From IMG/VR virus record IMGVR_UViG_3300048121_001678, positions 233,165 through 297,164 of that record: 64,000 nt of DNA, one strand, 5' to 3'. The translations under genes were made by a program, and so were the position numbers. The notes beneath the pieces are model-generated. The model worked only from the letters and a program-made list of their open reading frames with translations, had not been told where the DNA came from and did not search any database. Positions 1,299 through 49,037 of this stretch are shown piece by piece. Numbering within the stretch: position 1 is the stretch's first letter; the number at the start of each line of letters is the position of its first letter.

Positions 1299-1688
1299 GG
1301 GGGTGAATGGAATTGATTGGCAGGGTCAGTTGCACGGGGCACGTAGTGAGATGTTATCTATCACTTTAATCTATGATGGCAATTTTGTAATCGGCGAAAC
1401 TTTCGCAAAACTTCAGGCAGTAGGTCTCCTACGTACTGAAGAAGTAGCTGTAGCGTAAGACGTTAACAGTGAATCGGGTCGGTCAGGACATGTACCTATG
1501 AACAGAAGTCCGTTGTTGTGGTGGAAAAACGATTAAACCCTAAATTGAGTCGTACATCTATTGGTGATAGAGGATGTAAAAATTCAATCACATATTTCGG
1601 AACATTGTGAACTAATGTTGACCTAAACGTGTAGTCCTTTGTAGGTGGACTGAACAAGACGCGGGTTCGAATCCCGCCACCTCCACCA
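1299..1688 (+). ncRNA. ssrA: tmRNA; tag ORF 1393-1458 encodes GETFAKLQAVGLLRTEEVAVA*
   Basis: 5' GGGGGTG pairs with 3' CACCTCC-A-CCA with a G3.U70 alanine determinant; T-arm GCGGG-TTCGAAT-CCCGC; 390 nt; resume context gtaatc-GGC. Confidence 0.93.
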
Positions 1689-12061: not shown

Positions 12062-12379
12062 ATGAATAAAAACCAATTAATTATTGAAGACTATGATATT
12101 TTCGATACTGAATTATCTGTATATTTCTCAGTTAATCAAGAGTTAGACGTTAGAGAAGGTATAATAGATATCGATGAATTAGATACATGGCTTGAAAGTA
12201 TGGGACATTATGAGATGTCTGAAGATTGTTGGGATTATGCTACTGAATCACATTACACCAAAGATTGGACTATAGATTTTTATGAATATAAATCAGAGTT
12301 TTTAAGTGTCGACGACATAGTTGAGTTTACACATGATTATTATAAAGATAAAGCATTACCAAATTTTGTGGAAGAATGA
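12062..12379 (+). CDS. Acidic hypothetical protein
   Basis: 105 aa; ATGA overlap with the epimerase gene. Confidence 0.65.
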   Translation: MNKNQLIIEDYDIFDTELSVYFSVNQELDVREGIIDIDELDTWLESMGHYEMSEDCWDYATESHYTKDWTIDFYEYKSEFLSVDDIVEFTHDYYKDKALPNFVEE

Positions 12380-13014
12380 AAATACTATCAACGTCATTAG
12401 ATAACGTATATTTAATTGAAGAATCCGTACATAAAGATAATCGAGGATATTTTATGGAGACTTGGAATGAAATGGGATACTCATCAAAGAATCTTATTAA
12501 TGATTTATCCGTCGAATGGGCAGTAAAAGATGATGGGACAATGAATTCAACCTATTTTGTACAGGACAACCTATCCGTATCACATAAGGGTGTTTTTAGA
12601 GGACTTCATTACCAAACTGACATAAACGGACAAGCAAAACTAGTGAGGGTCCTGAAGGGGTCTGTAGTGGACTTTGTGGTGGATTTACGTGAGATGTCAG
12701 ACACCTATGGTAAGTTCGAGTATTTCGAATTAAATGATACGAATAATCTATCATTATTTGTACCACCGTACTATGCACATGGTTTCTTATCACTGAAAGA
12801 CGATACTATATTCACATATAAATGTGGTAATTACTATAATAAAAATTCAGAAGGTAGTATTGTTTATTCTGACCCAATCATTAGACACGTAAATGACTAT
12901 AGTCAAACAATAAAAGACGTAATTGATTTCTATCACCCTTGTGAAAGTGAAGATGATTTATTACTTTCGTATAAAGATAAACACGCACCTAAATTCTTAA
13001 AACGTAAATATTAA
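12376..13014 (+). CDS. rfbC: dTDP-4-dehydrorhamnose 3,5-epimerase
   Basis: DNRGYFME, FVQDNLSVS.KGVFRGLHYQ, QAKLVRV..G.V.DFVVDLR, AHGFL motifs. Confidence 0.93.
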   Translation: MKILSTSLDNVYLIEESVHKDNRGYFMETWNEMGYSSKNLINDLSVEWAVKDDGTMNSTYFVQDNLSVSHKGVFRGLHYQTDINGQAKLVRVLKGSVVDFVVDLREMSDTYGKFEYFELNDTNNLSLFVPPYYAHGFLSLKDDTIFTYKCGNYYNKNSEGSIVYSDPIIRHVNDYSQTIKDVIDFYHPCESEDDLLLSYKDKHAPKFLKRKY

Positions 13015-23066: not shown

Positions 23067-24923
23067 ATGAATATATTAGGTATACATACGGGACATGATG
23101 CATCACTGTCATTAATAATTGACAATAAATTAGTCGCGGCAGTTTCGATGGAAAGGTTTTCAAGGGTGAAAAAAGATTGGATTATTGATAGAGAAAATTT
23201 CGATAGATTTTTAAGGTCTTGCAATGTAACACTTGACGACATTGATTATGTATCTATGGGATATTGGAATAATGATAATATGGATTTCTGTAAATTATAC
23301 TCACCAAAAGATGAAAAATACCCGTTATCAACATATAATCGAGTGCACATGGAAATTCCATTGATTAATAATATTAAGTCGTACTTTCAGGATAAACCAT
23401 GGATAGATGAAATAGAATTTCACGAAGGTAAAGGTTATACTCTACCACGAATGATTGACCGTATAAGACCACCTTTTTCTTCAAGTGACATATCACACTC
23501 AAATGCGTTTAAGATAAACTTCGTAATTGATGGATACGATAGAATCATTCCAGGGTATTTTGTTGACCATCATATTTCACACGCATCTTCATCATATTTC
23601 ACATCACCTTTTAACAAATCATCTATATTCACTGTTGACGCATCCATGCATGAACCATCATCGTGTAGTGGGTATTTTTGGGCACATGAAAATACACTTA
23701 ACATATTGAGAGGTGCTGGTTATACCTATGGTAATTTCTATGATGTGGCTACAGAGTATTGTGGTGTTGGACCAGGGACAACTAAAGCCGGTACGTTAAT
23801 GGGATTATCATCATTTGGTAATATTAGTAAAAAGGCTCAAGATAATTGGGAATGGTGGACAAGACCTTTTGACCAACGGTCAGGTACTGAAGATTCACAC
23901 TATAATGATTGGTTATTCTTACAGATTTCAGGTAAATACCCTTATGTATCATCAATTAGACCTGAAATTGAAAATAAAGAACCAGGTTACGAACATTATA
24001 ATAGAGAGTATCAAATGGTTTACACTAAAAAAGACGTTGACACTCAAGAAGTAATGGACATTGCAGCCGATATTCAGTTTATTGCTGAAAAGTCATTAGT
24101 TAAATATGTTGAAGACCTTTATAACGAGACCCATACTATATGTGACGATAATTTATGTATTGCAGGTGGTACTTTTTTAAACTGCAATGCTAACTACAAA
24201 ATCGCCACTGAAACTTCTTTTAAAAATATACATATATTTCCAGCGTGTGGTGATGATGGAATAAGTGTTGGGTCATCTCTTTATGTTTTACATGAAATAT
24301 TAAATATTGAACGTACTACTTACACTAACAGTGAAATTTCTTATTTAGGGTTTCAATACATGTATCAACCAAAAAGTAAATTTGAGTCAATAGATTACAA
24401 TGTTAATACCGTAGCAAAAAGTATTAGTGAAGGTAAAATCATATGTTGGTATCAAGGAAGGAGTGAATTTGGTCCAAGAGCGTTAGGTAATAGGTCATTT
24501 ATTTCAGACCCAAGAAAGAAAGAAATGAAAGACCAATTAAATAGTCGAGTTAAATTTAGAGAATGGTTTAGACCATTTGCACCCGTAGTTTTAAATGAAC
24601 ATAAAGAAGAGTGGTTTAATATGGATTTTGAATCTCCGTTTATGTTATATACTGTACCTTGTAAGAGACCACAGGACATACCTTCGGCAGTACATATAGA
24701 TAACACATCAAGGGTACAAACACTAAAAAAAGACGATAATGAAGAGTTCCACGAACTAATCGAAGAATTTTACAAAATAACTGGAGTACCAATAGTAATG
24801 AACACATCATTAAACGTTAAAGGACAACCAATTGTTGAGACACCTGAAGAAGCGATGGAGTTATTTGAACAATCAAATGTCGATATTCTTGTGATTAATG
24901 ATAAGATGTACTTTAAAAACTAA
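23067..24923 (+). CDS. Carbamoyltransferase (NodU/CmcH family)
   Basis: GHDASL, HHISHA, GTLMGLSSFG, GG.FLNC, DDGISVG, GRSEFGPRALGNRS, REWFRPFAP, NTSLN. Confidence 0.93.
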   Translation: MNILGIHTGHDASLSLIIDNKLVAAVSMERFSRVKKDWIIDRENFDRFLRSCNVTLDDIDYVSMGYWNNDNMDFCKLYSPKDEKYPLSTYNRVHMEIPLINNIKSYFQDKPWIDEIEFHEGKGYTLPRMIDRIRPPFSSSDISHSNAFKINFVIDGYDRIIPGYFVDHHISHASSSYFTSPFNKSSIFTVDASMHEPSSCSGYFWAHENTLNILRGAGYTYGNFYDVATEYCGVGPGTTKAGTLMGLSSFGNISKKAQDNWEWWTRPFDQRSGTEDSHYNDWLFLQISGKYPYVSSIRPEIENKEPGYEHYNREYQMVYTKKDVDTQEVMDIAADIQFIAEKSLVKYVEDLYNETHTICDDNLCIAGGTFLNCNANYKIATETSFKNIHIFPACGDDGISVGSSLYVLHEILNIERTTYTNSEISYLGFQYMYQPKSKFESIDYNVNTVAKSISEGKIICWYQGRSEFGPRALGNRSFISDPRKKEMKDQLNSRVKFREWFRPFAPVVLNEHKEEWFNMDFESPFMLYTVPCKRPQDIPSAVHIDNTSRVQTLKKDDNEEFHELIEEFYKITGVPIVMNTSLNVKGQPIVETPEEAMELFEQSNVDILVINDKMYFKN

Positions 24924-25114: not shown

Positions 25115-25690
25115 ATGAAATTATTTAGTTACAATAAAAATTCTTTAGAATATAATAAAGTGAGAGTACTACCATATATGTTACTTTTTATTATTTTAAT
25201 ATTACTAAGCTATATGTATGGTTTTTTAGAGGGTAGAGAAGATAAAATTATAAAACTCACACCTCAAGAAAAAGAATTAATCTTAATTAATGTACAAGAC
25301 ACATCATTAACATTTAGTGAGGAAAAACTAATTTCACTAATGAATGAATTAAATATTAAGTTTCCTCATATAGTGTTAGCTCAGGCGAAAGTCGAGAGTG
25401 GTAATTATACTTCTAAAATTTTTAGAGAAAACCATAACCTATTTGGCATGAAGGAGGCTCGTGTAAGAATTCACACAGCACAGGGAACACAATTTAACCA
25501 TGCCTATTATAATACATGGAGGGAATCTGTGTATGATTACGCATTCTATCAATGTAGATACCTGTCTAATATTAACACTGAAGACGAATATCTAAGTTAT
25601 TTAGGTCAATCATACGCAGAGGCAACTAATTATGTGTCTATATTGAAAACAATGATAAAGAGAGAAAAACTAAGAGAAAAGTTTAACTAA
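25115..25690 (+). CDS. Glucosaminidase/muramidase (FlgJ-like GH73) with N-terminal TM anchor
   Basis: LAQAKVESG..NHNLFGMK; YA.A..Y. Confidence 0.8.
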   Translation: MKLFSYNKNSLEYNKVRVLPYMLLFIILILLSYMYGFLEGREDKIIKLTPQEKELILINVQDTSLTFSEEKLISLMNELNIKFPHIVLAQAKVESGNYTSKIFRENHNLFGMKEARVRIHTAQGTQFNHAYYNTWRESVYDYAFYQCRYLSNINTEDEYLSYLGQSYAEATNYVSILKTMIKREKLREKFN

Positions 25691-27357
25691 TGGTAATAAT
25701 AGGTTTATCGCATGGTCATGATGCAGGTGCAACACTTTTTAAAGATGGTGAAATTATAGTATCAATATCAGATGAGAGGTTGACTAGAACAAAAAAAAAT
25801 TACGGATTTTTTAGTAATGTGATTGCAACTAAATCAATTGATTATTGTTTGGAGTACTCTAATTTGTCCATTGATGATGTGGATTATATTTTTTTTAACA
25901 CCACAAACCCAAAACCCGATGTGTTATATTGTTTAAAATATTATTATAATATTGATAGTAATAAAATAATATATGTGACACATCATTTATCACACGCAGC
26001 ATCATCTGTTTTCACTTCAGAATTTGAAGATGTTGTTATAGTGGTTTCTGATGCATTAGGTGAGGACCCCATTTATGGGGACTATGGTTGGAGGTCATTT
26101 GAAGAAAAGGGTTTTAATTTAGTTGAACACGAAGATATAGAAAGTAGTTTCGGTGAGGGGTGGTCTATATACCATTATAAAAATGGTGAGTTTTTTAATT
26201 TAGAAAAAAAATGGGTAGATAGTAATGGTCAGTTTAAACAACTAAAAGATTGTTCGATAGGTTACCTATATGAATGTGGGACAGAACAATTAGTTGGTGG
26301 TATAACTATTGGTAGTGCTGGTAAATTAATGGGATTAGCATCATTCGCGGATAAAGATTGGGTTTCAAAACAAGAAAGAAATCACAAAATTATTTATGAT
26401 AATTTATCTATCAAAGGTGAATTATTTTATCCTGAAATTAATCATAATAGTCCATTTCAAATAAAGTCAAACGTTGCGGGGTTATACCAAAGAGAACAGG
26501 AGGAATGTTCTCATTTTTTAGTTGAGAAATCTAAAAAATTAAGTAATAGTAATAATATTACAGTTGCAGGTGGTTCATTTTTAAATTGTACAACAAACAG
26601 TAATATTGTGAAATCCAACTTATTTGAATCTCACCATTTTTTCGCATCGTCTGACGACTCAGGAATATCTTTAGGGTGTGCTTTATACGGGGCATATACT
26701 ATGAGTAGTGTTAATCGTAAAAAATTCTTTAGTCCTTATTTAGGTAGAGAATATAGTAGAGAAGAAATTTTAAATGAATTAGAAAAACACAATTATTTAA
26801 ATTACAATGAAATAACCGATTTTACACAATTAACAGATATAGTCACTAACCAAATAATAGATAATAAAATTATTGGTTGGTTCCAAGGTAGAAGTGAAAT
26901 AGGTCCAAGAGCGTTAGGTAATAGAAGTATATTGGCAAACGCATCGACTCCATGGATTTCTGACTATATTAATGGCGAGATTAAAAAAAGAGAATGGTAC
27001 AGACCATTTGCACCTTCAGTATTATATGAGTATCAGTCTGAAATATTTGATTTGGATTATTTTTCACCTTATATGTTACTAACCGCTGAAGTAAATACCG
27101 AATGGAGAAACAAAATACCATCAGTAACACATATAGATAATACCTCAAGATACCAATCAGTAACTAAAGATACTAACGAAAGGTTTTATGATTTGATAAG
27201 TGAGTTTAATAATAAGACAGGTATACCTCTACTCTTAAATACTAGTTTTAACGGACCAACAGAACCAATAGTTGAGTCACCAAAAGACGCTATAAATACA
27301 TTCTTAGAGGTGGGTTTAGATATTTTAGTAATTAATGATTTTGTAATTACAAGATAA
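25690..27357 (+). CDS. Second carbamoyltransferase (NodU/CmcH family)
   Basis: GHDAGA, HHLSHA, GKLMGLASF, GRSEIGPRALGNRS, REWYRPFAP, NTSFN. Confidence 0.93.
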   Translation: MVIIGLSHGHDAGATLFKDGEIIVSISDERLTRTKKNYGFFSNVIATKSIDYCLEYSNLSIDDVDYIFFNTTNPKPDVLYCLKYYYNIDSNKIIYVTHHLSHAASSVFTSEFEDVVIVVSDALGEDPIYGDYGWRSFEEKGFNLVEHEDIESSFGEGWSIYHYKNGEFFNLEKKWVDSNGQFKQLKDCSIGYLYECGTEQLVGGITIGSAGKLMGLASFADKDWVSKQERNHKIIYDNLSIKGELFYPEINHNSPFQIKSNVAGLYQREQEECSHFLVEKSKKLSNSNNITVAGGSFLNCTTNSNIVKSNLFESHHFFASSDDSGISLGCALYGAYTMSSVNRKKFFSPYLGREYSREEILNELEKHNYLNYNEITDFTQLTDIVTNQIIDNKIIGWFQGRSEIGPRALGNRSILANASTPWISDYINGEIKKREWYRPFAPSVLYEYQSEIFDLDYFSPYMLLTAEVNTEWRNKIPSVTHIDNTSRYQSVTKDTNERFYDLISEFNNKTGIPLLLNTSFNGPTEPIVESPKDAINTFLEVGLDILVINDFVITR

Positions 27358-30394: not shown

Positions 30395-30511
30395 ATGAAA
30401 GAGAAAGTATTAAAATATAACAACGACTGGAAAGGTCGTAGAATATACGAAGAGAATAAAAAGAAAGAGTTGGTCAATAAGACTAAAACCTTTAACACCA
30501 AAGAGAGATGA
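30395..30511 (+). CDS. Cassette micro-ORF ending FNTKER
   Basis: 38 aa MKEKVLKYNNDWKGRR..TFNTKER*. Confidence 0.55.
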   Translation: MKEKVLKYNNDWKGRRIYEENKKKELVNKTKTFNTKER

Positions 30512-30639
30512 GTGATAAAAATAAAGAAACAGAGATGTTAAGAGCTTCATTAATGAAGAAAGTTAGTGAACTAAATGATAATGAAATTATATCTTTATAT
30601 GATGACTTATCTGAATTCTTTAACACCAAAGAGAGATGA
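30508..30639 (+). CDS. Cassette micro-ORF (43 aa), copy 1
   Basis: MSDKNKETEMLRASLMKKVSELNDNEIISLYDDLSEFFNTKER*. Confidence 0.7.
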   Translation: MSDKNKETEMLRASLMKKVSELNDNEIISLYDDLSEFFNTKER

Positions 30640-30767
30640 AAAGATATTGGAATAAATTCCTCAACTTCATATTACCAAATAGAAGAGAGAGGTTACTTAT
30701 TGAAATAATGAAACGAGACCAAGATTTGGGTCTCTATGATGAAACCTTTAACACCAAAGAGAAATGA
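30636..30767 (+). CDS. Cassette micro-ORF (43 aa)
   Basis: MKRYWNKFLNFILPNRRERLLIEIMKRDQDLGLYDETFNTKEK*. Confidence 0.65.
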   Translation: MKRYWNKFLNFILPNRRERLLIEIMKRDQDLGLYDETFNTKEK

Positions 30768-31045
30768 GTGAAGTAAATCCAAATTACAATCCACAAGCAG
30801 ATTTTGACAACTTTGGTGAAGAGATGGAACACATCGTTAAGACAACACCTAAAGAGGTGCTAAAAAAGGAGTGGGATAAAGTATTAGCAGAATATGGTAC
30901 TGATACACACGACAAGATTCTATCTATGACTGATGACTTTGTTCAGTCTAATCGTAGTGAAGGACAAACCTATGCTCATTATCACTATGATATGATGGCA
31001 GACTTTGCTCTACATATATTAGAAACCTTTAACACCAAAGAATGA
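30764..31045 (+). CDS. Cassette ORF (93 aa)
   Basis: Ends ETFNTKE*. Confidence 0.7.
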   Translation: MSEVNPNYNPQADFDNFGEEMEHIVKTTPKEVLKKEWDKVLAEYGTDTHDKILSMTDDFVQSNRSEGQTYAHYHYDMMADFALHILETFNTKE

Positions 31046-31098
31046 TAGTCAAAGTGTTTTGATTATCACATATTGAGAAATTTTAACACCAAAGAGAG

Positions 31099-31230
31099 AT
31101 GAGTGATACAAATAAAGAAACAGAGTTGTTAAGAGCTTCATTAATGAAGAGAGTTAGTGAACTAAGTGATAATGAGATTATATCTTTATATGATGACTTA
31201 TCTGAATTCTTAAACACCGAAGAGAAATGA
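31099..31230 (+). CDS. Cassette micro-ORF (43 aa), copy 2 of 30508..30639
   Basis: MSDTNKETELLRASLMKRVSELSDNEIISLYDDLSEFLNTEEK*. Confidence 0.7.
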   Translation: MSDTNKETELLRASLMKRVSELSDNEIISLYDDLSEFLNTEEK

Positions 31231-31484
31231 ACGAAGTAGAAATCTTTATCAACCGTCTCAAGAAAATTGGTATTGAGCTTGAGTTAATGGGTAATCTACC
31301 TTGGATTTACTTACACAAAGTAGATGGTAATAGGGTACAACCTGAAGATTATAATGCTAATCACGGTTACACTATTGCTTGGTACCCTGTTAGAGTGGAC
31401 CAAAAGATACATCTTGATAGTAATTTGAAACGAACCTTTGAAGTAATTAGAAAATACAAATCCTTTAACACCAAAGAGAAATGA
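31227..31484 (+). CDS. Cassette ORF (85 aa)
   Basis: Ends KSFNTKEK*. Confidence 0.7.
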   Translation: MNEVEIFINRLKKIGIELELMGNLPWIYLHKVDGNRVQPEDYNANHGYTIAWYPVRVDQKIHLDSNLKRTFEVIRKYKSFNTKEK

Positions 31485-31630
31485 AACTAAAAGTCAGAGG
31501 AGAAAAATATGATGTATACGGTCAGTTCTACATCATTCCAACCATCAAAGTAACCCACGACAAATTACTATATGGATATTATACCATAGATTTAGTTTGG
31601 GGAAAATGGGGTGTTTCAATTTGCTTTTAG
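31481..31630 (+). CDS. 49 aa micro-ORF after the last repeat
   Basis: MKLKVRGEKYDVYGQFYIIPTIK..WGKWGVSICF*. Confidence 0.55.
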   Translation: MKLKVRGEKYDVYGQFYIIPTIKVTHDKLLYGYYTIDLVWGKWGVSICF

Positions 31631-34611: not shown

Positions 34612-34685
34612 GCACCCATAGCTCAGCTGGATAGAGCATCTGCCTTCTAAGCAGACGGTCTCAGGTTCGAATCCTGATGGGTGTA
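34612..34685 (+). tRNA. trnR: tRNA-Arg(UCU)
   Basis: GCACCCA/TGGGTGT acceptor; TCTGC-CTTCTAA-GCAGA; no encoded CCA. Confidence 0.93.
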
Positions 34686-34720
34686 CTGGTGAACACAACT
34701 TAGTTGTAAGTAACCTAAAC

Positions 34721-34794
34721 GGACTTTTAGCTCAGTTGGTTAGAGCACCTGACTCATAATCAGTAGGTCGATGGTTCGAGCCCATCAAGGTCCA
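34721..34794 (+). tRNA. tRNA with CAU anticodon (Ile2-like or elongator Met)
   Basis: GGACTTT/AAGGTCC acceptor; loop CTCATAA. Confidence 0.88.
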
Positions 34795-34964
34795 CGTTGT
34801 TGTATTAAATAAAAATAACCAATATCTTTATATTACAGAAAATGTAATGTATATTTGTACTACGAGAGAGAGACAGTAAAGCTGATTAAATTGAGATTAT
34901 GGTAAAGGTTAACCACTCATTCACGCAGTAACCTTGAAAGACCCGAAAACCTCTCTCTTTTAAA

Positions 34965-35037
34965 GCCTTAATAGCTCAGTTGGTAGAGCAGCACATTTGT
35001 AATGTGCGGGTCGGCGGTTCGAGTCCGTCTTGAGGCT
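34965..35037 (+). tRNA. trnT: tRNA-Thr(UGU)
   Basis: GCCTTAA/TTGAGGC; GCACA-TTTGTAA-TGTGC. Confidence 0.92.
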
Positions 35038-35114
35038 CATTAACTGAAACATACCGTTCCTTAAATACGGGTAACGGAAGACCAGGTAGAGAACATTAAG
35101 TAATCTACCAAATA

Positions 35115-35199
35115 GGAAGATTGACAGAGTGGTCGATTGTACTGGTCTTGAAAACCAGCGTACCGAAAGGTACCGTAGGTTCGAATCCTACATCTTCCG
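35115..35199 (+). tRNA. trnS: tRNA-Ser(UGA)
   Basis: GGAAGAT/ATCTTCC; CTGGT-CTTGAAA-ACCAG; long variable arm. Confidence 0.93.
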
Positions 35200-35205
35200 C
35201 AACAA

Positions 35206-35288
35206 TGGGGAGTTGAGCAATTGGTTGGCTCGACAGACTGTAAATCTGTTCCTTTTTAGGCTTGGGGGTTCGAGTCCCTCCTCCCCAA
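35206..35288 (+). tRNA. trnY: tRNA-Tyr(GUA)
   Basis: TGGGGAG/CTCCCCA; ACAGA-CTGTAAA-TCTGT; long variable arm. Confidence 0.9.
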
Positions 35289-35290
35289 CG

Positions 35291-39963: not shown

Positions 39964-40472
39964 ATATATTTGTATTGGATTGGGACGTTGAAAAGTGTGC
40001 TCAATATCACAACGACAAACATGTGGTTAAGATGATATTGGAGACGGCTCAGTTATTGTGTGGTGTTCATCATATGACCGACCAAGCTAACGACCAAGCT
40101 AACGACCAAGCTAACGACCAAGTCCCATACAAGTTATCACATAAAAACCACCCCTGTTCTATTTGGGCTCGTGAGAGTATTACTAATTATCTATGGTTAT
40201 GTGAATTGGGTTTGGAACTGTGTTATGAATACACTCATCGTTACGGTAAGAGACACAAATCTCAGGATGTGATAGAGTGGTGTATCGAAAACAAAGCCAA
40301 CCTACCCGAGAAAGGTTTTACAGAACCAGCAAAGGCAATGCCGATACAATACAAGGAAAAATCAGTTGTTGAATCTTATCGAAACTACTATCGAGGTGAA
40401 AAAGCGTCATTTTCTAAATGGAAAAATCGTCCTACCCCTTTATGGTTTAGTGAATCTTTACTATCATTATAA
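39960..40472 (+). CDS. Pyrimidine-dimer DNA glycosylase (DenV-like)
   Basis: MNIF.LD..CA..H.DKHVVKMILETAQLL, H.NHPC..W, YRNYY..K. Confidence 0.82.
   Translation: MNIFVLDWDVEKCAQYHNDKHVVKMILETAQLLCGVHHMTDQANDQANDQANDQVPYKLSHKNHPCSIWARESITNYLWLCELGLELCYEYTHRYGKRHKSQDVIEWCIENKANLPEKGFTEPAKAMPIQYKEKSVVESYRNYYRGEKASFSKWKNRPTPLWFSESLLSL
40080..40122 (+). repeat. In-frame 12-bp tandem repeat (DQAN x3.6)
   Basis: gaccaagctaac x3 plus gaccaag. Confidence 0.9.
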
Positions 40473-42562: not shown

Positions 42563-43222
42563 ATGGATTACGGAAAAGATTTTAGAAAGTATGCGATGAG
42601 TGATTTTAATATGTCATCATCAACTTTGGATTCAATTGAATCATCACTAACCCCTTACATCTTAGAAGAGAGAGAGATGAGGGTAACACAAATGGATATA
42701 TTCTCTCGATTAATGAGAGACCGACTATTGTGGGTTGCTGGACCAGTAAATGACCATATGTCAACAATGGTTCAAGCGCAACTTATGTATTTAGACTCTG
42801 TAGATAACATGCCAATTACGATGCACATTGACTCACCAGGTGGTTCAGTAAAATCAGGATTGTCTATGGTCGATGTAATGCATTATATCAAATCAGATAT
42901 TGCTACGGTAAATACTGGTATGGCTGCGTCAATGGGTTCAGTACTATTAGGTGCAGGTACAAAAGGGATGAGGTCCTCACTTCGTTTCTCACGTACAATG
43001 TTACACCAATCATCAGGAGGAGCAATGGGTAATATCCAAGATGCGGAAATCACAATGAACGAATGGAAGAAGTTGAATGACATTCTATTTGGATTGTTAG
43101 GTGAGTTCTGTGGTAAAGACCCTGAGCAAGTGAAACAAGATGCCTCACGTGATTTGTGGTTGTCAGCACAAGACGCTCTCGAGTATGGTATTATTGATGA
43201 GATTGTTAAATCCAAAAAGTAA
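42563..43222 (+). CDS. clpP: ATP-dependent Clp protease proteolytic subunit
   Basis: DIFSRLM.DR, IDSPGGSV, AASMG, MLHQ, RD.WLSA..A.EYGIID; TATATTTG at 42533-42540. Confidence 0.95.
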   Translation: MDYGKDFRKYAMSDFNMSSSTLDSIESSLTPYILEEREMRVTQMDIFSRLMRDRLLWVAGPVNDHMSTMVQAQLMYLDSVDNMPITMHIDSPGGSVKSGLSMVDVMHYIKSDIATVNTGMAASMGSVLLGAGTKGMRSSLRFSRTMLHQSSGGAMGNIQDAEITMNEWKKLNDILFGLLGEFCGKDPEQVKQDASRDLWLSAQDALEYGIIDEIVKSKK

Positions 43223-43245
43223 TATGTAGAATATACATATTACCT

Positions 43246-43278
43246 AAAAACCCCCATCTATTAAGGTGGGGGTTTTTA
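43246..43278. terminator. Bidirectional terminator between clpP and the rhodopsin operon
   Basis: aaaaaccccc-atctattaaggt-gggggttttt; same family as hairpins near 4089, 53038, 53516 and 55569. Confidence 0.75.
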
Positions 43279-43302: not shown

Positions 43303-43941
43303 CTATTTTTTATCTCCACTTGTTGCATGTTTAACACCCATTATTGTACCAATAATACTAAAGGAGTTTGTTAATAAAATACCAAAAAGGTTTGACCATG
43401 TTGATTCAATAATTTTAGAATCATGACCCTTTAATAATACAAAGACATACAAAGCAGTTGTTATAACACCAACACCCATTATTACCCAAAGGGCCACCTT
43501 AACTATATTACTCATTAATTCGGTTTGTGTTTTCTTTTGAAGTAGCGAAAGGTCGGTTTCAGCAAGTTCCTTAGCTTGTTCCGCTTTATATCTTAACCTA
43601 TCCGCTTCTTCCCTAGACTTCTCAGATTCTTCTTTAGACTTAGTAGCTATTTCTGCAGAATCAATAGCTTCTTTTAGTGCTGTTTCTAATTGTTTGTTAA
43701 CTCTAATATTTTCTTTTGCTGCTGATTCTAAGTCTTTATTTTGAGACTGAACCTGTTTGGTAACCTGTAAACGTTTCTTTCTTGCAGTAACATCTCTGTC
43801 CTTACATGTTTTTAGATAGTCTACTAATTCTTTATCATCCTTTTCTGCTTTTAGAACTTTTAATATATTTCCTTCCAAATATATTTTCTTCTCCTTAGCT
43901 AAGGTCAACAATACTTTTTTTACTTCAGGAGTTATTATCAT
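43303..43941 (-). CDS. Coiled-coil protein with two C-terminal TM helices
   Basis: K/E-rich heptads then VALWVIMGVGVITTALYVFVLL and LFGILLTNSFSIIGTIMGV; ATGA overlap with the rhodopsin stop. Confidence 0.75.
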   Translation of the reverse strand: MIITPEVKKVLLTLAKEKKIYLEGNILKVLKAEKDDKELVDYLKTCKDRDVTARKKRLQVTKQVQSQNKDLESAAKENIRVNKQLETALKEAIDSAEIATKSKEESEKSREEADRLRYKAEQAKELAETDLSLLQKKTQTELMSNIVKVALWVIMGVGVITTALYVFVLLKGHDSKIIESTWSNLFGILLTNSFSIIGTIMGVKHATSGDKK

Positions 43942-44519
43942 TTTTCATATTTTGTGTGTATGTAAATAGCCACACCTAATTTTGCAGTTAAATCAACTAA
44001 AGAATACAATATAATTGTCATTAATGAATCAGTTGTAAAATATACTATAGGGTAAAACATCCATAAAGTTAATACTCCAATGAAAAAATTTAATTGTTTT
44101 TTCTTTATTCCATTTGATAAACTCACGAAAGTATAGATTGAAAACATGGTTCCTATGAAACCACCCAAGACTTTGGGTATAATAGATGCTTCACCTAAGA
44201 ATCCAAACAACAACATACCCAACATACAGAGTATTGAAGATAATAAGGTTCCAATTTTTTTGTGTTTTACTTTTAAGAAAGTATACATTTGATATATTAG
44301 AATAGGTACGGTAAATGTCCAGTCTAAGTATCTCCATGTTCTTAAATTCGTAGTATCATCAATACCAAATAAATGTGACATTAACATATATGATACACCA
44401 GCAATCAATAATATTATTGATGACAATTTTGACTGTAGTGAATTTAATGAGTTGTACCCAAAATAAAGTCCTCCACCTAAAAATAATAAGGACGTAGTGA
44501 ATAAAATATCGCTAATCAT
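43938..44519 (-). CDS. Compact type-1 microbial rhodopsin (DTQ motif)
   Basis: 7 hydrophobic helices; helix C RYLDWTFTVP, helix D MLLFGFLGE, helix F W.FYP, helix G DLTAK with Lys180. Confidence 0.9.
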   Translation of the reverse strand: MISDILFTTSLLFLGGGLYFGYNSLNSLQSKLSSIILLIAGVSYMLMSHLFGIDDTTNLRTWRYLDWTFTVPILIYQMYTFLKVKHKKIGTLLSSILCMLGMLLFGFLGEASIIPKVLGGFIGTMFSIYTFVSLSNGIKKKQLNFFIGVLTLWMFYPIVYFTTDSLMTIILYSLVDLTAKLGVAIYIHTKYEK

Positions 44520-45021
44520 TTTTGTACTGTTTTAATTTATCGTTTAGTTTAATATTTTCCATTCTAAGGTTAAAGTTAACCTCCATCTGTTCCTTTATTT
44601 TTTCTTCCAAATCTTCTCTATACATTTTGGATACATCATCCTTTATTTTTTCTTGTTTTTTAGATTTGATTTTTTGGTTGATTCTCCTGATATTACTTAA
44701 CGCACTAATTGAGATGACTACCCAACCCCAATTCATGTGACTCCATGTATATGGGTCGTATTCATAGAAGTGTAGACCAATAAACAAAATGGACATAATA
44801 CCATATAGGTACGCAAATAATTTTCTCCTTTCTAATTTACTATATACCACTGAGTAAAGTGTACCAAAACCAATTAACGAGCTCAGAATACCAATATACC
44901 AAAGGTGATAATTTTCCATCATCAACACAGCAGGGGCAAAGATGAACCAAATTAAACCTTGAATAATTTCAGTAGGTTCAGAATCGTGGTAGGTTAAGAT
45001 ATGTCCTAGTTTTTTTATCAT
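44512..45021 (-). CDS. 4-TM membrane protein with C-terminal coiled coil
   Basis: Hydrophobic residues ~20-110, then K/E/Q-rich helix; overlaps both neighbours. Confidence 0.75.
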   Translation of the reverse strand: MIKKLGHILTYHDSEPTEIIQGLIWFIFAPAVLMMENYHLWYIGILSSLIGFGTLYSVVYSKLERRKLFAYLYGIMSILFIGLHFYEYDPYTWSHMNWGWVVISISALSNIRRINQKIKSKKQEKIKDDVSKMYREDLEEKIKEQMEVNFNLRMENIKLNDKLKQYKND

Positions 45022-45455
45022 TTGTACACTTTAAATGGGTTTGTTTTATTTTTATACCCTTCATAGTCTTCCCTAAAATCCTCTAAACGTGGTTCAATGT
45101 CGTCTGATTTTATAATCCAAAATTGAGCACCAGCATTTTTTGCCTTCTCTATTTCTTGATTATCATCAGATGATGATATGATTCCTATCACACATCCATT
45201 TCCGTATTCATGATTTATTTTATGGACCATCTCAATTCCATTGAATGAAGAACCTATGATATTCAAATCAACAAACACACATTCAGGACGTTCATGGTTC
45301 ACGTCATCTGGAAACCATTCTTTGAACTTTTTATCTGCTTCATCTGAAGAGTTTAACGCCTCTAACGAAAGAGTAATATCTAAGATACTACACGCATCTT
45401 CGAAGACCAAGTGGAAAAGGTCTTCATCATCAATTAACATTATTGAATTAATCAT
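45018..45455 (-). CDS. Single-domain response regulator (receiver)
   Basis: IMLIDD (D9/D10), VFVDLN (D63), ISSS, IIK. Confidence 0.9.
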   Translation of the reverse strand: MINSIMLIDDEDLFHLVFEDACSILDITLSLEALNSSDEADKKFKEWFPDDVNHERPECVFVDLNIIGSSFNGIEMVHKINHEYGNGCVIGIISSSDDNQEIEKAKNAGAQFWIIKSDDIEPRLEDFREDYEGYKNKTNPFKVYK

Positions 45456-45462
45456 TTCTATA

Positions 45463-46713
45463 TTATTTAATTTTAATCTTTATTTTAGTTCCGTAATTTA
45501 ATTTTTCGGAGGTAATAGAAAAGTCGTGCTCTTGTAGGATTGCAATACATATATTCAGACCTAACCCACTACCACTTTCCTTTTGGTCTTTTTTTCTCGT
45601 ATAAGGTTTAGACAGTTCTATAAACTCTCTTTGACTCATACCTCGTCCATTATCTTGTATAATTAAAGTTTCTTCGTCTTCCATATAAATCATTACCGAC
45701 TTTGTAGGACTATCATTATATTTCAAACCGTTACGAATTAAATTATCTATTGCTGTACAAAATAATGGTTCATTCACATCAATCTCAGGTAAATCATCAA
45801 TCACCACCTGTTTCACATAAGAAGTTGAGGATAGATAGTCTCTCAAAATTTCTTTGAGGTTGGATTTTGTTTTTTCTAACTGAACTTCTTGCTTTACTAA
45901 GTTTGTGAACTCTTTCACACCGGAATACACTTTCTGAGTATGTTTCAAACCTTCTTCCAACATCTTAAGTGGAGAATCTATTTTTAATTCTTTAATTTGT
46001 TCATCAGAAATTCTTCTTTTCAAAGACCTTAATCCTCTTGGCATATAAGTATTAATACCTGAATGCATATCGTGTCTAAGGATTTTAGCTGCATGTTCTA
46101 AATAAGAGTTTTTTTGGTTCAACACCACTTCGGCATCATGTTGTGAAGTAATATCCGTTGCTATTTTTAATATGGTAGTATACTCACCATCCTCATTTTT
46201 AATAGGTGTATAATTACCAAATAACCATTTTTTGGAACCGTCTTTTGCAACCCTTTCGAATTCACCATTCACACTCTTACCCTGTCTCAAAGTATTCCAA
46301 AAGTTTAAATACTCCTTACTTTTAGCATATTCAGGTGTGACCATATTACTATGATGTTTGTTAACTATATTTTTTTCAGGACATCCCATAATATCACAGA
46401 AATTGTCATTAGCTGAAATTATATTCCCGTCAATACCCATAATCACCACTAAATTTGATTTACTGATAGCATCTAGTTGTGCATTTACGTTTTCTTCTTT
46501 GAGTCTGATGTTTTTTAAAAGCTCACTAATAACCATAAAGAAGGGTGGCATAAACGCAATTACACAAGCGTATCCAAATTGTGCTAAAAACATACTGTTT
46601 TCACATATACCAAAAACAATACAAGATTGCACAGAGAAAAACGCAAACATAATTATTGCCGCAATTCCCAAAGATATCTTGGACTTAATTGATAATAGTG
46701 AAACCGTATCCAT
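45463..46713 (-). CDS. Membrane-anchored PAS/PAC sensor histidine kinase
   Basis: 2 TM; PAS DG.IISAN.NF..W..L..G...GEF.RVAKDG..W..Y.PI..ATDIT; H-box RHDM; N-box DNLIRNGLKY; G1 DNGRG; G2 GSGLGL. Confidence 0.93.
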   Translation of the reverse strand: MDTVSLLSIKSKISLGIAAIIMFAFFSVQSCIVFGICENSMFLAQFGYACVIAFMPPFFMVISELLKNIRLKEENVNAQLDAISKSNLVVIMGIDGNIISANDNFCDIMGCPEKNIVNKHHSNMVTPEYAKSKEYLNFWNTLRQGKSVNGEFERVAKDGSKKWLFGNYTPIKNEDGEYTTILKIATDITSQHDAEVVLNQKNSYLEHAAKILRHDMHSGINTYMPRGLRSLKRRISDEQIKELKIDSPLKMLEEGLKHTQKVYSGVKEFTNLVKQEVQLEKTKSNLKEILRDYLSSTSYVKQVVIDDLPEIDVNEPLFCTAIDNLIRNGLKYNDSPTKSVMIYMEDEETLIIQDNGRGMSQREFIELSKPYTRKKDQKESGSGLGLNICIAILQEHDFSITSEKLNYGTKIKIKIK

Positions 46714-46716
46714 AAA

Positions 46717-46917
46717 TTATAACTCAGACTTTCTGAATCCACATTTACCGAAAAACCACTTTGAAGGGCAGAAACCTGTCCACACTCCTACGTTTAACAT
46801 GGCGATGACGAAAATTACGACACCCCATGATTCCAATAAAAAACCTGAAAGTAGTACCAACGACATTAGAAGGTATACCATACGTGTGTCTGTGACACTT
46901 TTTAATAAATTTTTCAT
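46717..46917 (-). CDS. YgaP/DUF2892-like 2-TM protein
   Basis: R..YL...TGFCP motif. Confidence 0.7.
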   Translation of the reverse strand: MKNLLKSVTDTRMVYLLMSLVLLSGFLLESWGVVIFVIAMLNVGVWTGFCPSKWFFGKCGFRKSEL

Positions 46918-46924
46918 ATATTGT

Positions 46925-47047
46925 TTACATCATGTTTATAGTTGCAAAAAAAGCAACTTTTATTCTTATCCATAATCTTTTGGACCATGTCAAAGATTTA
47001 AATTCTTTAGTTAAGAACATATCTTCTATCTCTTTATAATCTTCCAT
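46925..47047 (-). CDS. 40 aa leader micro-ORF of the rhodopsin operon (not in the ORF track)
   Basis: MEDYKEIEDMFLTKEFKSLTWSKRLWIRIKVAFFATINMM*; TATTTAT at 47051-47057. Confidence 0.55.
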   Translation of the reverse strand: MEDYKEIEDMFLTKEFKSLTWSKRLWIRIKVAFFATINMM

Positions 47048-47127
47048 ACTATAAATACCTTCAAATTATGGTATTTACTTTTTTTATTTTAGATTTACAT
47101 AATCTAATTATTATTCATACTTTTAAT

Positions 47128-47398: not shown

Positions 47399-48022
47399 AT
47401 GGACTGGATAAAGATTGCAGAACTATTAATAACATCACTAACGTCAATTATTATTGCACTGTTAGGTGCTGGTTATTTTAGAAAAATGACGATTAAAAAA
47501 GAGAAAAATAAATCTAAAGAGTCGTTGATGCAGCAAATTAAAAACGACGAGATTGTTCACTTATCAATTCGTGAAATAAGGAGAAGATATAACGCAGATA
47601 GAGTATATATTTGGCAATTCCATAACGGTGGGAGCTTTTATACCTCATCACCAATGCAAAAAATTTCAATTACTTACGAAAGAAACTCAGACGGGTTAGA
47701 AAGAAAGGCAGATAAAAACCAAAACCATTTAGTGTCACATTTCAACACTTTTGTTAAAGATGTTATCGACTATAATATGTATTACTCAAATATTGAAACA
47801 ATGCAAGATTTAGGGTTGAGGTCATTAGCACAATCTAATGGAACCAAATCCCATACTTCGGTACCTATTTACGATAAACTTGGTAACTTAGTTGCCATAT
47901 TATCTCTTGACTGGGTCTTTTCACTAATCCCTACAGAGTATCTTAAAAAAGACGGTGACTTCACTCAAGATTTTAAAGAGGAAATATCAAAGGATGCCGA
48001 CACATTAGATAATTATTTATAA
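47399..48022 (+). CDS. Single-TM protein with GAF-like domain; holin candidate (T4 gpt-like architecture)
   Basis: N-terminal TM; ADRVYIWQFHNG..PIYD..GNLVAILSLDW; TATTTAT at 47375-47381. Confidence 0.6.
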   Translation: MDWIKIAELLITSLTSIIIALLGAGYFRKMTIKKEKNKSKESLMQQIKNDEIVHLSIREIRRRYNADRVYIWQFHNGGSFYTSSPMQKISITYERNSDGLERKADKNQNHLVSHFNTFVKDVIDYNMYYSNIETMQDLGLRSLAQSNGTKSHTSVPIYDKLGNLVAILSLDWVFSLIPTEYLKKDGDFTQDFKEEISKDADTLDNYL

Positions 48023-48536: not shown

Positions 48537-49037
48537 ATGCTAAAGAAATTAATAAACTTTTTTAAAGAAATTTTCGGTAAAACTGAAAATAAAAATATTA
48601 ATAAACCGTATAAAAATGATTTTAATACTGAACCAAAAGTAGAGTCTTGGAAAGAAAAACAAGAAGAAAAATTAGAAGAACTAAAAGATATTTTAGAAAC
48701 ACCTAAACCATCTTCTACACCTAAACCATCTTCTACACCTAAACCATCTTCAACACCTGAGCCATCTTCAACACCTGAACCAGTTAGACGAGATGAAGGT
48801 ATGTTCGAAAGAGGTCTTTATGAGGAACTCATTAACTTTTTAATGGGTGCTGGATTCAACGAACATGAGGTTGGTCTATACATAAAAGAATTGGGAGAAG
48901 GATTATTTATTATCGATTTTATCGAAAAAACAATAACTAAGAAAATGGGTAACACATCTATTGATGGTAGAATATTAGAAGGACCTGAAGGTTTTGATAG
49001 AGTTGTTAGATTTTTAGAAAAACATAGGGGACTATAA
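48537..49037 (+). CDS. Hypothetical protein with TPKPSS repeats
   Basis: 166 aa ORF. Confidence 0.6.
   Translation: MLKKLINFFKEIFGKTENKNINKPYKNDFNTEPKVESWKEKQEEKLEELKDILETPKPSSTPKPSSTPKPSSTPEPSSTPEPVRRDEGMFERGLYEELINFLMGAGFNEHEVGLYIKELGEGLFIIDFIEKTITKKMGNTSIDGRILEGPEGFDRVVRFLEKHRGL
48699..48782 (+). repeat. In-frame 18-bp tandem repeat (TPKPSS x4.7)
   Basis: acacctaaaccatcttct and variants. Confidence 0.88.

Follow-up and report, generated by a model that had tools for sequence, protein, structure and literature searches.

Gene content of the locus

The window analyzed here is a 64,000-nucleotide stretch of a 297-kb IMG/VR contig (IMGVR_UViG_3300048121_001678, positions 233,165 to 297,164). 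It contains seven co-oriented genes on the minus strand at 43303-47047, which include a PAS histidine kinase, a receiver, and a 193-aa type-1 rhodopsin. The features of this region are as follows:

47051..47057 (-), TATTTAT upstream motif (promoter-like or initiation-region motif of this phage), 10 nt before the leader ATG
46925..47047 (-), 40-aa leader protein of no known family
46717..46917 (-), 66-aa protein with two TM segments
45463..46713 (-), 416-aa membrane histidine kinase: TM hairpin with a loop of about 5 residues, PAS domain, DHp with His214, and ATP-binding domain
45018..45455 (-), 145-aa single-domain receiver (CheY-like) with phospho-acceptor Asp63
44512..45021 (-), 169-aa membrane protein (read as 4 TM) with a C-terminal coiled coil, an optional module member
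43938..44519 (-), 193-aa type-1 (microbial) rhodopsin with a D-T-Q helix-C motif and Schiff-base Lys180
43303..43941 (-), 212-aa protein with a conserved N-terminal region, a long coiled coil, and two C-terminal TM segments, a near-universal module member
43245..43278 (strand not assigned), bidirectional intrinsic-terminator-like hairpin between the cassette and the convergent ClpP-like gene
47399..48022 (+), 207-aa TM protein, a possible associate but not a proven part, divergently oriented about 350 nt from the cassette

The original prediction, made from the sequence alone, had described these seven genes as tightly coupled, and this observation is confirmed: the successive gaps are 7, 3, and 7 nt, followed by overlaps of 4, 8, and 4 nt. 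All seven genes are conserved at the protein level in independent assemblies from JGI, ENA, NCBI, and Logan, and the identical gene order recurs there, which shows that they are real genes and that the arrangement is not an assembly artefact.

With regard to the flanking signals, TATTTAT is a real upstream motif in this genome, with 26 sense-strand hits within 60 nt upstream of 118 genes out of 68 hits on both strands of the whole window. The hits cluster at -21..-26 and -8..-11, although a function for the motif has not been shown. The hairpin downstream of the cassette is GC-rich and has a 15-bp stem (6 GC pairs) with T-runs on both sides; this pattern is unique in the window, with 0 expected by chance. 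It was predicted that the operon ends in a terminator of a family used across this genome. However, the 13 perfect-stem terminator-like hairpins in the window differ in sequence, and this description is therefore only loosely true.

Protein families and conserved residues

In Pfam searches, the kinase matched PAS_3 (49.8 bits), PAS_9, and HATPase_c (49.5 bits), the receiver matched Response_reg (30.6 bits, just above the 30.2 cutoff), and the rhodopsin matched Bac_rhodopsin (53.2 bits against a cutoff of 24.6). The 40-aa, 66-aa, 169-aa, and 212-aa proteins have no significant family in Pfam or PHROGs, and the proposed YgaP-like identity of the 66-aa protein is thus not supported. The leader is conserved at 44-69% protein identity in front of the module in about 40 other viral loci, and the 66-aa protein, whose hydrophobic segments were read from hydropathy, at 56-85% in many module loci with or without the rhodopsin.

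Hydropathy shows two N-terminal TM segments in the kinase. It also has an invariant LRHDMHSG H-box, N, G1, and G2 boxes, and an invariant PPFF in TM2, and its PAS domain best matches the FAD-binding PAS of MmoS (3ewk). In the receiver, D9, D10, D63, S94/S95, and K116 are invariant, with 63-98% identity across five loci. The TM segments of the 212-aa protein lie at residues 142-172 and 185-203, and its second TM and tail are almost invariant and rich in polar residues.

The rhodopsin has every retinal-pocket residue intact and looks functional. R63, D66, W67, T70, P72, Q77, W153, Y156, P157, D176, and K180 are invariant in the family; Q77 occupies the proton-donor position, whereas the next-nearest sequence group mostly has Glu there. 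An AF2 model shows seven helices with a pLDDT of 88.9, and dN/dS is 0.07-0.125, which indicates purifying selection.

Phage origin of the contig

The presence of phage hallmark genes on the parent contig had been set out in advance as a test, since a bacterial or chimeric contig would have undermined the prediction. Large terminase (TerL; phrog_2, E=1e-39) and portal (phrog_213, E=4e-67) genes lie on the same contig, about 13-17 kb before the window and about 57 kb from the rhodopsin, and the element is a tailed phage. Translation signals point to a Bacteroidota host. The window itself has few hallmark genes, and its ten largest proteins have almost no PHROG or Pfam hits; read coverage was not examined. 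However, the window has 117 genes of mean length 161 aa, is 89% coding, and carries a tRNA cluster and a tmRNA, and the same upstream motif occurs on both sides of the cassette and at its own start. In relatives, T4-like tail-fibre, baseplate, and UvsX genes lie next to the module, with the tail-fibre gene 1.7 kb away. A bacterial or chimeric origin of the cassette is therefore already largely refuted and appears very improbable.

Distribution of the module and of the rhodopsin

Co-occurrence and synteny of these genes in viral contigs, also named beforehand as a check, were examined. The kinase-receiver-membrane-protein module occurs in at least 523 viral contigs, in which the kinase has its relatives. 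In the best 80 loci, ranked by alignment score (which favors full-length kinases), the receiver follows the kinase in 79, and the 212-aa protein is found after the receiver (or the 169-aa gene or the rhodopsin) in 78, whereas only 4 carry the rhodopsin and 76 do not. The leader-66aa-kinase-receiver-(169aa)-212aa arrangement is thus a general phage two-component module, and the rhodopsin is an optional add-on. The 169-aa protein is present in one kinase clade with or without the rhodopsin and in the 169aa-kinase-rhodopsin order of loci L049/L051, but is absent in loci L005, L216, and L219.

The reverse link is strong, in contrast to the possibility, raised beforehand as a refutation, that homologous kinase-receiver pairs never occur with the rhodopsin. 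About nine rhodopsin lineages (31-100% identity) sit inside or beside the module in at least five gene orders: kinase-receiver-169aa-rhodopsin-212aa, rhodopsin-kinase-receiver-212aa, 169aa-kinase-rhodopsin, kinase-receiver-rhodopsin-212aa, and rhodopsin-kinase. On the kinase tree, the rhodopsin-bearing loci fall in four places, so the link has been kept or re-made repeatedly, although the rearranged orders could partly reflect local shuffling after a single insertion. In loci L216 and L218, the adjacent kinase has no PAS domain, and its TM hairpin is fused directly to the H-box, which leaves a membrane partner as the only evident input; the finding that PAS-less kinases occur only with rhodopsin rests on n=2 and on a kinase sample whose ranking by alignment score favors full-length kinases. 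At least two family lineages (L008/L009 and L056) have no kinase within the 1-6 kb available.

The 207-aa protein encoded divergently from the cassette has a weak GAF-like match (Pfam E=0.003, below cutoff) and belongs to PHROG 38864 of unknown function. A homologue (28% identity, E=2e-13) lies immediately upstream of the solitary family rhodopsin in L056, but it is absent from the other module loci.

The rhodopsin family comprises 13 clusters at 50% identity, followed by a score gap from 138 to about 80 bits for full-length proteins. No close relative was found in 185,579 cellular species genomes, in which the best match is 30% identity. No phage rhodopsin was found in INPHARED, PHROGs, or BFVD, where the only hit is the ChoanoV1 rhodopsin, and no report of such a protein or of its link to the kinase module was found in the literature library searched.

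Proposed function

The original prediction, that the phage builds its own photoreceptor and phosphorelay in the infected cell, is only partly supported. Phage origin, an apparently functional rhodopsin, its persistent linkage to the kinase and receiver, and the lack of a previously recorded phage rhodopsin in the sources searched agree with it, but a dedicated seven-gene light-sensing operon is not supported. Nor are the two coiled-coil membrane proteins supported as rhodopsin-specific, Htr-like transducers: they have no HAMP or MCP domain, the 212-aa protein is present in rhodopsin-less modules, and the 169-aa protein is absent from several rhodopsin-bearing ones. The suggested timing of replication or lysis by daylight was not tested and is pure inference.

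The best reading, held at a probability of about 0.5, is that the 193-aa protein is a retinal-binding sensory rhodopsin of a large tailed phage of a probable Bacteroidota host, recruited as an optional light input to an intramembrane-type kinase in a two-component module much more widespread than itself. This suggests, but does not prove, that some phages sense light. In this view, the kinase, which has only a two-helix membrane hairpin with almost no external loop, must take membrane signals from partner proteins. Briefly, host-supplied all-trans retinal would bind Lys180, and green light would isomerise it. The resulting helix movement would pass sideways in the membrane to the kinase hairpin, much as sensory rhodopsin II acts on HtrII, and change autophosphorylation at His214. 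The phosphate would then move to Asp63 of the receiver, which would act on an unknown target, one candidate being the invariably linked 212-aa coiled-coil membrane protein. The analysis establishes the genes, their intact catalytic and retinal-pocket residues, purifying selection, phage origin, and the recurrent linkage of rhodopsin and kinase, whereas retinal binding, physical contact, any light effect on the kinase, and the output are inferred; no experimental data exist on retinal binding, the photocycle, or rhodopsin-kinase contact. The non-carboxylic Gln at the donor position is as expected for slow-cycling sensors, and the 4-8 nt overlaps of the rhodopsin gene with its neighbors are consistent with translational coupling. 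In addition, the asymmetry of the linkage, in which the rhodopsin is nearly always with the kinase but the kinase is rarely with the rhodopsin, fits an accessory input module.

The main rival, considered less likely, is that the rhodopsin is an auxiliary metabolic gene, either a light-driven ion pump or a light-gated channel like the giant-virus rhodopsins, that energises or depolarises the infected cell. Its place in the module would then be a historical accident or reflect indirect coupling, with the redox-type PAS domain sensing the changed energy state. The closest solved sequences are proteorhodopsin pumps (E about 1e-8) and the viral rhodopsin OLPVRII, the latter also being the best fold match (TM-score 0.85-0.86). 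The counter-ion pair D66/D176 and R63 are intact, and some family members stand alone without a nearby kinase. Against the sensory reading, most of the kinases have their own PAS domain, which resembles the FAD-binding redox sensors MmoS and Aer and could alone be the input, and the kinase TM hairpin is equally conserved in the many modules without rhodopsin, so it did not evolve for the rhodopsin. A non-carboxylic donor does not exclude pumping, since DTG- and DTK-type pumps exist. Also against the sensory reading, no retinal-synthesis gene was seen next to the cassette in any locus, as judged from precomputed Pfam annotation. Against the pump or channel reading, the donor position is an invariant Gln rather than Glu or Asp, the proteorhodopsin-type His of helix B aligns with a Leu (read from the alignment), and identity to any characterised pump or channel is only about 20-23%. 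Moreover, the rhodopsin stays next to the kinase through at least five rearrangements and down to 31% identity, and indirect redox coupling cannot work for the two adjacent kinases that lack the PAS domain.

An unlikely alternative is that the opsin is a light-independent membrane scaffold or regulator, as proposed for the retinal-free flotillin-associated rhodopsins, or that the whole module serves a membrane process such as lysis control or superinfection exclusion in which light plays no part. The module works without any rhodopsin in 76 of 80 loci, its most conserved element is the polar second TM helix of the 212-aa protein, and a retinal-free rhodopsin relative with a solved structure (9r21) is among the fold matches. 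However, the Schiff-base Lys and the whole aromatic retinal pocket are invariant across the family down to about 31-40% identity, which is hard to explain without the chromophore.

Comparison with related systems

Sensory rhodopsin II-HtrII and sensory rhodopsin I-HtrI of haloarchaea, also found in Salinibacter, likewise combine a seven-helix retinal protein lacking a carboxylic proton donor with an adjacently encoded partner that has a two-helix membrane hairpin, and their signal ends in a His-Asp phosphorelay to a single-domain receiver. Here, the hairpin belongs to the kinase itself, there is no HAMP or methyl-accepting domain and no CheA/CheW, and the partner module usually exists without the rhodopsin. 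The phage-encoded rhodopsin is only 193 aa and belongs to another clade, nearest to proteorhodopsin and OLPVRII, with SRII chains appearing only as weak matches (E about 0.5). In the histidine-kinase rhodopsins of green algae (HKR1/COP5, two-component cyclase opsins; PMC6284317, PMC8575461), a rhodopsin also controls a histidine kinase and a receiver, but these are single fused eukaryotic polypeptides with a cyclase output, whereas the phage has separate genes, a bacterial-type membrane kinase, and a stand-alone receiver, with no cyclase.

The giant-virus rhodopsins (OLPVRII, 6sqg; OLPVR1, 7aky; ChoanoV1 rhodopsin) are also virus-encoded and short, and 6sqg is the best structural match. However, those viruses infect eukaryotes, identity is about 22%, and the phage family is set apart by the score gap and by Gln rather than the Glu common in the next group; in the one giant-virus-like context examined, the rhodopsin had no kinase neighbor. 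Green-light proteorhodopsin (7b03, 8cnk, 2l6x) is the best sequence match among solved structures (E=1.3e-8), sharing the RYxDWxxTVP helix-C motif and Leu at the spectral-tuning position (read from the alignment), but the phage protein has D-T-Q instead of D-T-E and is about 40-50 residues shorter, with minimal loops.

Intramembrane-sensing histidine kinases of the BceS and LiaS types, which depend on accessory membrane proteins, resemble the phage kinase in its two TM helices, its loop of about 5 residues, its accompanying small conserved membrane proteins, and, in two variants, the lack of any cytoplasmic sensor domain. This comparison was not tested; there is no sequence relationship and no ABC transporter or LiaF-like partner, and most copies carry a PAS domain. 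Heliorhodopsins that regulate neighboring-gene products (glutamine synthetase, ABC transporter; PMC9529153, PMC11109279) likewise have a role inferred from, and exerted on, the product of an adjacent gene, but they form a different rhodopsin superfamily branch with inverted topology, whereas the phage protein is a type-1 rhodopsin by Pfam and by fold.

Organization of the Gene Cassette

The original prediction described seven co-oriented genes in one coupled operon, and this observation held. The seven ORFs are all located on the minus strand at the positions predicted:
46925-47047 (-), 40-aa leader protein
46717-46917 (-), 66-aa small protein
45463-46713 (-), 416-aa histidine kinase
45018-45455 (-), 145-aa receiver
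44512-45021 (-), 169-aa coiled-coil membrane protein
43938-44519 (-), 193-aa rhodopsin
43303-43941 (-), 212-aa coiled-coil membrane protein
The first three junctions are gaps of 7, 3 and 7 nt, and the last three are overlaps of 4, 8 and 4 nt.

In Pfam searches, the kinase matched PAS and HATPase_c (49.5 bits for the latter), the 145-aa protein matched Response_reg only marginally above threshold (30.6 bits against 30.2), and the 193-aa protein matched Bac_rhodopsin (PF01036; 53.2 bits against a cutoff of 24.6). The other four proteins have no family in Pfam or PHROGs. The 66-aa gene had been labelled YgaP-like (DUF2892), but no Pfam family at E up to 1 and no PHROG was found for it, and the label has no profile support; a GFCP motif in it is reminiscent of DUF2892, a resemblance that was not examined by any test. 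A strong bidirectional terminator-like hairpin lies at 43245-43278. The TATTTAT motif before the leader is a real, position-clustered upstream motif of this genome, with 26 sense hits in the 60 nt before 118 genes, out of 68 hits in the whole window on both strands. TATTTAT(A) lies upstream of 25 genes in the sense orientation, clustered at -21..-26 and -8..-11 from the start codon, and is a candidate phage promoter or initiation-region element. Its reverse complement resembles the T4 late-promoter core.

Phage Origin of the Contig and Its Probable Host

The window is the last 64 kb of the 297,164-bp contig IMGVR_UViG_3300048121_001678 and represents an accessory region, with 117 genes of mean length 161 aa and a coding fraction of 89%. 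PHROG and Pfam searches with the ten largest proteins of the window found almost nothing, and most large proteins have no family in either. An exact-sequence search with the first protein of the window returned no record, and a tblastn search of 50,697 GenBank phage records with a large neighbouring protein gave no match. The window also encodes an endolysin-like protein, a ClpP-like protease that also matches head-maturation protease families, and sugar-modifying enzymes.

The presence of phage hallmark genes on the parent contig had been set in advance as a check on the prediction, and such genes were sought by walking up the contig. The first 10-kb step gave only protease genes, whereas the second gave a large terminase (L222:15152-16927, L222 being a segment of the same contig; phrog_2 TerL, E=1.1e-39) and a portal protein (L222:16977-18851; phrog_213, E=3.6e-67), about 13-17 kb before the window. 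The contig is accordingly that of a tailed bacteriophage (Caudoviricetes), and a bacterial or chimeric origin, which had been named as grounds for refutation, is essentially excluded, although read coverage and the other roughly 210 kb of the contig were not examined. In related contigs the same kinase module lies 1.7 kb from a 1,886-aa T4-like tail fibre and near baseplate-wedge, UvsX-like, DnaB and ribonucleotide-reductase genes.

The host is probably a member of Bacteroidota. Shine-Dalgarno-like tetramers were found in only 3 of 94 genes, below the 8.7% background, and positions -14 to -10 and -3 are A-rich, which is the pattern described for Flavobacterium (PMC6847099). In addition, CHU_C-domain genes lie near the cassette in relatives, and a conserved neighbouring gene is shared with 630-640-kb uncultured phages and with Prevotella and Maribacter phages. 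On the other hand, the Bacteroidota -7 promoter motif TAnnTTTG was not clearly enriched (109 observed against about 89 expected) and was dropped as host evidence. Several relatives come from sets whose record names suggest surface-ocean surveys; this is an inference from the names, as sample metadata were not consulted.

The Rhodopsin Family

Homologues of the rhodopsin form a tight family of short proteins (187-235 aa), with 55 clusters at 90% identity. An exhaustive profile search of 1.84 billion representatives found 13 clusters at 50% identity, after which scores drop from 138 bits to at most 92 bits for fragments and about 80 bits for the next full-length proteins. No cellular genome among 185,579 species representatives has a relative above 30% identity. 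The rhodopsin gave no match by tblastn in the 50,697 GenBank phage records, and no phage record, PHROG family or BFVD model matched this family. A metagenome scan with the rhodopsin alignment was swamped by ordinary proteorhodopsin-like genes and yielded one new family member, at the locus L056.

In an alignment of 27 sequences, Arg63, Asp66, Trp67, Thr70, Pro72, Glu110, Trp153, Tyr156, Pro157, Asp176 and the Schiff-base Lys180 are invariant. The family therefore has the Schiff-base Lys in helix 7 with an Asp four residues before it, the helix-3 Arg and Asp, and the Trp/Tyr/Pro retinal pocket expected of type-1 microbial rhodopsins; Tyr156, Asp176 and Lys180 remain invariant after adding more distant members. 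The proton-donor position is an invariant Gln77 in the same 27 sequences, giving the motif D-T-Q, although one distant member has Glu, and the next sequence group mostly has Glu there.

The AF2 model contains seven predicted helices with very short loops (residues 2-22, 28-53, 59-82, 89-110, 116-135, 140-160 and 166-191; pLDDT 88.9, pTM 0.85). Rhodopsin structures fill the list of fold matches, the best being the giant-virus rhodopsin OLPVRII (TM-score 0.85-0.86, 22% identity) and then proteorhodopsins, while the best sequence matches in the PDB are proteorhodopsins at E about 1e-8. Green absorption is expected from Leu74. dN/dS between close relatives is 0.07-0.125. The gene thus encodes a constrained protein that very probably binds retinal, although covalent retinal binding and a photocycle were not measured here. 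No retinal-synthesis gene was seen beside the cassette, so the chromophore would have to come from the host or from elsewhere in the genome.

A Two-Component Module Commoner than the Rhodopsin

The co-occurrence and synteny of these genes in IMG/VR had been proposed as a test of the original prediction. A scan of IMG/VR with the kinase alignment found 523 relatives. In the best 80 of these loci (L136-L215, 57-100% identity), the order kinase-receiver-212aa is conserved; it is often preceded by the 40-aa and 66-aa genes and, in one clade, includes the 169-aa gene. Only four of the 80 loci contain the rhodopsin, namely the contig of the window, its closest relative, and L163/L164. The membrane hairpin of the kinase, including an invariant PPFF in TM2, is as conserved without the rhodopsin as with it. 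The seven genes are therefore not a dedicated photoreceptor operon, but a general phage two-component module into which a rhodopsin has been inserted in a minority of phages. The interpretation in the original prediction, that the phage builds its own photoreceptor and phosphorelay, is supported only in part.

The module, which comprises a PAS kinase, a CheY-like receiver and a 212-aa coiled-coil membrane protein, appears to be an undescribed, widespread two-component system of T4-like marine phages, present in at least 523 viral contigs. No GenBank phage record carries this kinase, for which tblastn gave only a partial PAS match, and there is no dedicated PHROG family (the kinase gets only weak generic hits of about 51-53 bits). 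No paper on it was found.

Linkage of the Rhodopsin to the Kinase

The rhodopsin is nevertheless tied to the kinase. The original prediction would have been refuted if homologous kinase-receiver pairs never occurred with the rhodopsin; instead, five gene orders were recovered for family members ranging from 100% down to 31% identity.

Gene orders around members of the rhodopsin family (L numbers denote loci recovered in database searches)
kinase-receiver-169aa-rhodopsin-212aa: window, L002-L004, L006/L007, L012/L013, L163/L164
rhodopsin-kinase-receiver-212aa: L005, L219
169aa-kinase-rhodopsin: L049-L051
kinase-receiver-rhodopsin-212aa: L216, probably L220
rhodopsin-kinase: L218

Three lineages show no kinase in the flank available, L008/L009 (1.2-1.5 kb each side), L056 (6 kb each side) and L221 (0.7 kb). 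On the kinase tree, the rhodopsin-bearing loci fall in four places, so at least four gains or losses are needed. Rhodopsin similarity does not track kinase similarity: L005 has 52% rhodopsin identity but only 48% kinase identity, whereas L006 has 50% and 70%.

In L216 and L218, the kinase variants (L216:713-1615 and L218:678-1583) are about 300 aa and have no PAS domain, the two-helix membrane hairpin being fused directly to the H-box. Such a kinase has no sensor of its own, and the adjacent family rhodopsin is the obvious candidate input. This rests on two loci, and because the kinase sample favoured full-length proteins, it is not claimed that PAS-less kinases are exclusive to rhodopsin loci. 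A second, weaker association (n=2) involves a 207-aa single-TM protein at 47399-48022 (+), divergently oriented beside the cassette. Its homologue (L056:5374-5985; 28% identity, E=2e-13) lies immediately upstream of a solitary rhodopsin in an unrelated contig. A role for this protein as a GAF or bilin sensor is unsupported, as its GAF-like Pfam match is below threshold and it has no PDB match.

The Signalling Proteins

The signalling proteins look active. The kinase has an ATP-binding domain in which the N, G1 and G2 boxes (DNLIRNGLKYN, DNGRG and GSGLGLN) are invariant. With regard to the phospho-accepting His in a dimerisation (DHp) helix, there is no Pfam HisKA hit, but an invariant LEHAAKILRHDMHSG stretch has His214 followed by Asp in the expected place; taken together these observations do not decide the point, and phosphorylation was not assayed. 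The receiver keeps Asp9, Asp10, the phospho-acceptor Asp63, Ser94/Ser95 and Lys116, all invariant, and has no output domain. It is the most conserved protein of the set, still 89% identical where the rhodopsin is 50%.

The PAS domain of the kinase resembles the FAD-binding PAS of MmoS (single sequence E=1e-12, profile E=2e-29), then that of Aer, and then LOV domains, which are weaker profile matches (1e-11 to 1e-8). Flavin binding was not examined. A LOV-type flavin photoreceptor was considered and rejected, because such domains carry an adduct-forming Cys in the NCRFLQ motif, whereas the aligned stretch reads NKHHSNMV, with no Cys at that place.

The 212-aa protein (43306-43941 (-)) has its strongest conservation in a basic stretch just before its coiled coil (residues about 50-72, RKKRL.VTKQVQ.QNK) and in an almost invariant polar second TM helix (residues about 181-206, WSN..GILLTN.FSI.GTIMGVKYA). 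This hints at a specific molecular function that no profile library recognises. Whether it is a partner of the kinase or a target of the receiver is not known, and its structure was not predicted.

Possible Function and Comparison with Other Systems

The favoured reading, with a probability of about 0.5, is a sensory rhodopsin that passes a light-induced helix movement laterally to the kinase hairpin, modulating a phosphorelay from His214 to Asp63. While the gene arrangement, the conserved residues, the phage origin and the recurrent linkage are results of the sequence analysis, everything about function is inference from sequence and gene context, and no multimer models were made. The supporting points are the recurrent, rearranged and translationally coupled adjacency, the non-carboxylic donor, the loop-less kinase, the PAS-less variants, and the asymmetry of co-occurrence.

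The main alternative, considered unlikely but not dismissed, is a pump or channel acting as an energy or ion AMG, either unrelated to the kinase or sensed indirectly by the redox-type PAS domain. The nearest characterised relatives and the solitary family members favour it, whereas the Gln donor and the PAS-less kinases do not. Two features of proteorhodopsin-type outward proton pumps (DTE motif) were looked for and not found: the carboxylic proton donor on helix 3 (Glu108 equivalent) is replaced by Gln77, and the helix-B His that pairs with the primary counter-ion, in the WHYMYM stretch of proteorhodopsin, aligns with Leu46 in the phmmer alignment to 7b03. A light-independent scaffold role appears still less likely, being hard to square with the invariant retinal pocket.

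In working principle, the nearest system is SRII-HtrII, with the kinase playing both transducer and CheA. The non-carboxylic residue at the donor position agrees with sensory rhodopsins, but the adjacent transducer with two TM helices, HAMP and a methyl-accepting domain was not found: neither coiled-coil protein has a HAMP or MCPsignal hit, and the only adjacent two-TM signalling protein is the kinase itself. In logic, the system resembles the fused histidine-kinase rhodopsins of algae, although the rhodopsin, kinase and receiver are separate ORFs in every locus. In fold, it resembles the giant-virus rhodopsins, but the 22% identity and the fall in profile score do not support membership of that clade (groups I and II); the 28%-identical neighbour P0055 lies on a giant-virus-like contig. 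It is a member of none of these.

Virus-encoded rhodopsins are so far known from giant viruses of eukaryotes. Literature searches for phage rhodopsins or phage histidine kinases found nothing relevant, INPHARED contained no such case, and a November 2026 survey of about 40,000 rhodopsins never mentions phages. The coupling of a sensory-type rhodopsin to a His-Asp relay is already known; what is new is the host (a bacteriophage), the clade, and the use of an unfused membrane kinase as partner. More tentatively, some tailed phages of marine Bacteroidota might perceive light themselves, with a minimal 193-aa rhodopsin directly gating a phage-encoded intramembrane histidine kinase, in some lineages one with no other sensor domain, and setting the course or timing of infection through a CheY-like receiver. 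If so, it would be the first photoreception system of a bacteriophage and a new, very compact two-protein rhodopsin-kinase signalling pair. It would also mean that infection of abundant marine bacteria can respond to light independently of the host, which bears on diel patterns of viral lysis in the sea. Whatever the rhodopsin turns out to do, a module present in more than 500 viral contigs, yet absent from cultured-phage records, matters in itself, and the pair of PAS-less kinase and 190-aa rhodopsin would be an attractive minimal optogenetic switch for bacteria.

Other Features of the Window

The phage encodes a tmRNA at 1299-1688 (+) (Rfam RF00023, 82.5 bits, full length), with an unusual tag peptide predicted by ARAGORN, and a cluster of five tRNA genes at 34612-35289 (+), Arg-TCT, Met-CAT, Thr-TGT, Ser-TGA and Tyr-GTA. 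The ClpP-like protease lies at 42563-43222 (+) (Pfam CLP_protease, 191 bits), and a 671-aa ATP-dependent protease (phrog_4871, 813 bits) is encoded at L054:16354-18369, L054 being a further segment of the contig (about 226.1-228.1 kb). The closest phage-record matches of the latter are 630-640-kb uncultured phages. Two paralogous Nol-like carbamoyltransferases (phrog_1601, E=1e-119 and 1e-109) lie about 770 nt apart at 23067-24923 and 25690-27357 (+). Together with a dTDP-4-dehydrorhamnose epimerase (12376-13014) and a family-25 glycosyltransferase (3281-4045), they point to sugar or nucleotide-modification capacity.

Several repeats were also detected. Six copies of a motif of about 23 nt (CCTTTAACACCAAAGAGAGATGA), spaced 54-382 nt apart, occur at 30486-31490 in a region with only small ORFs, with one more copy at 11559, and could be an iteron, origin or regulatory array. 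Short in-frame tandem repeats lie inside genes at 40079-40110 (a 12-nt unit three times, at about 40.08 kb) and 48700-48755 (an 18-nt unit three times, at about 48.7 kb). Four copies of AATAAAAAAAGGAGGG, at 103-140 and in the 41 nt just before the window start, form two back-to-back hairpin terminator-like structures at the boundary of the first gene.
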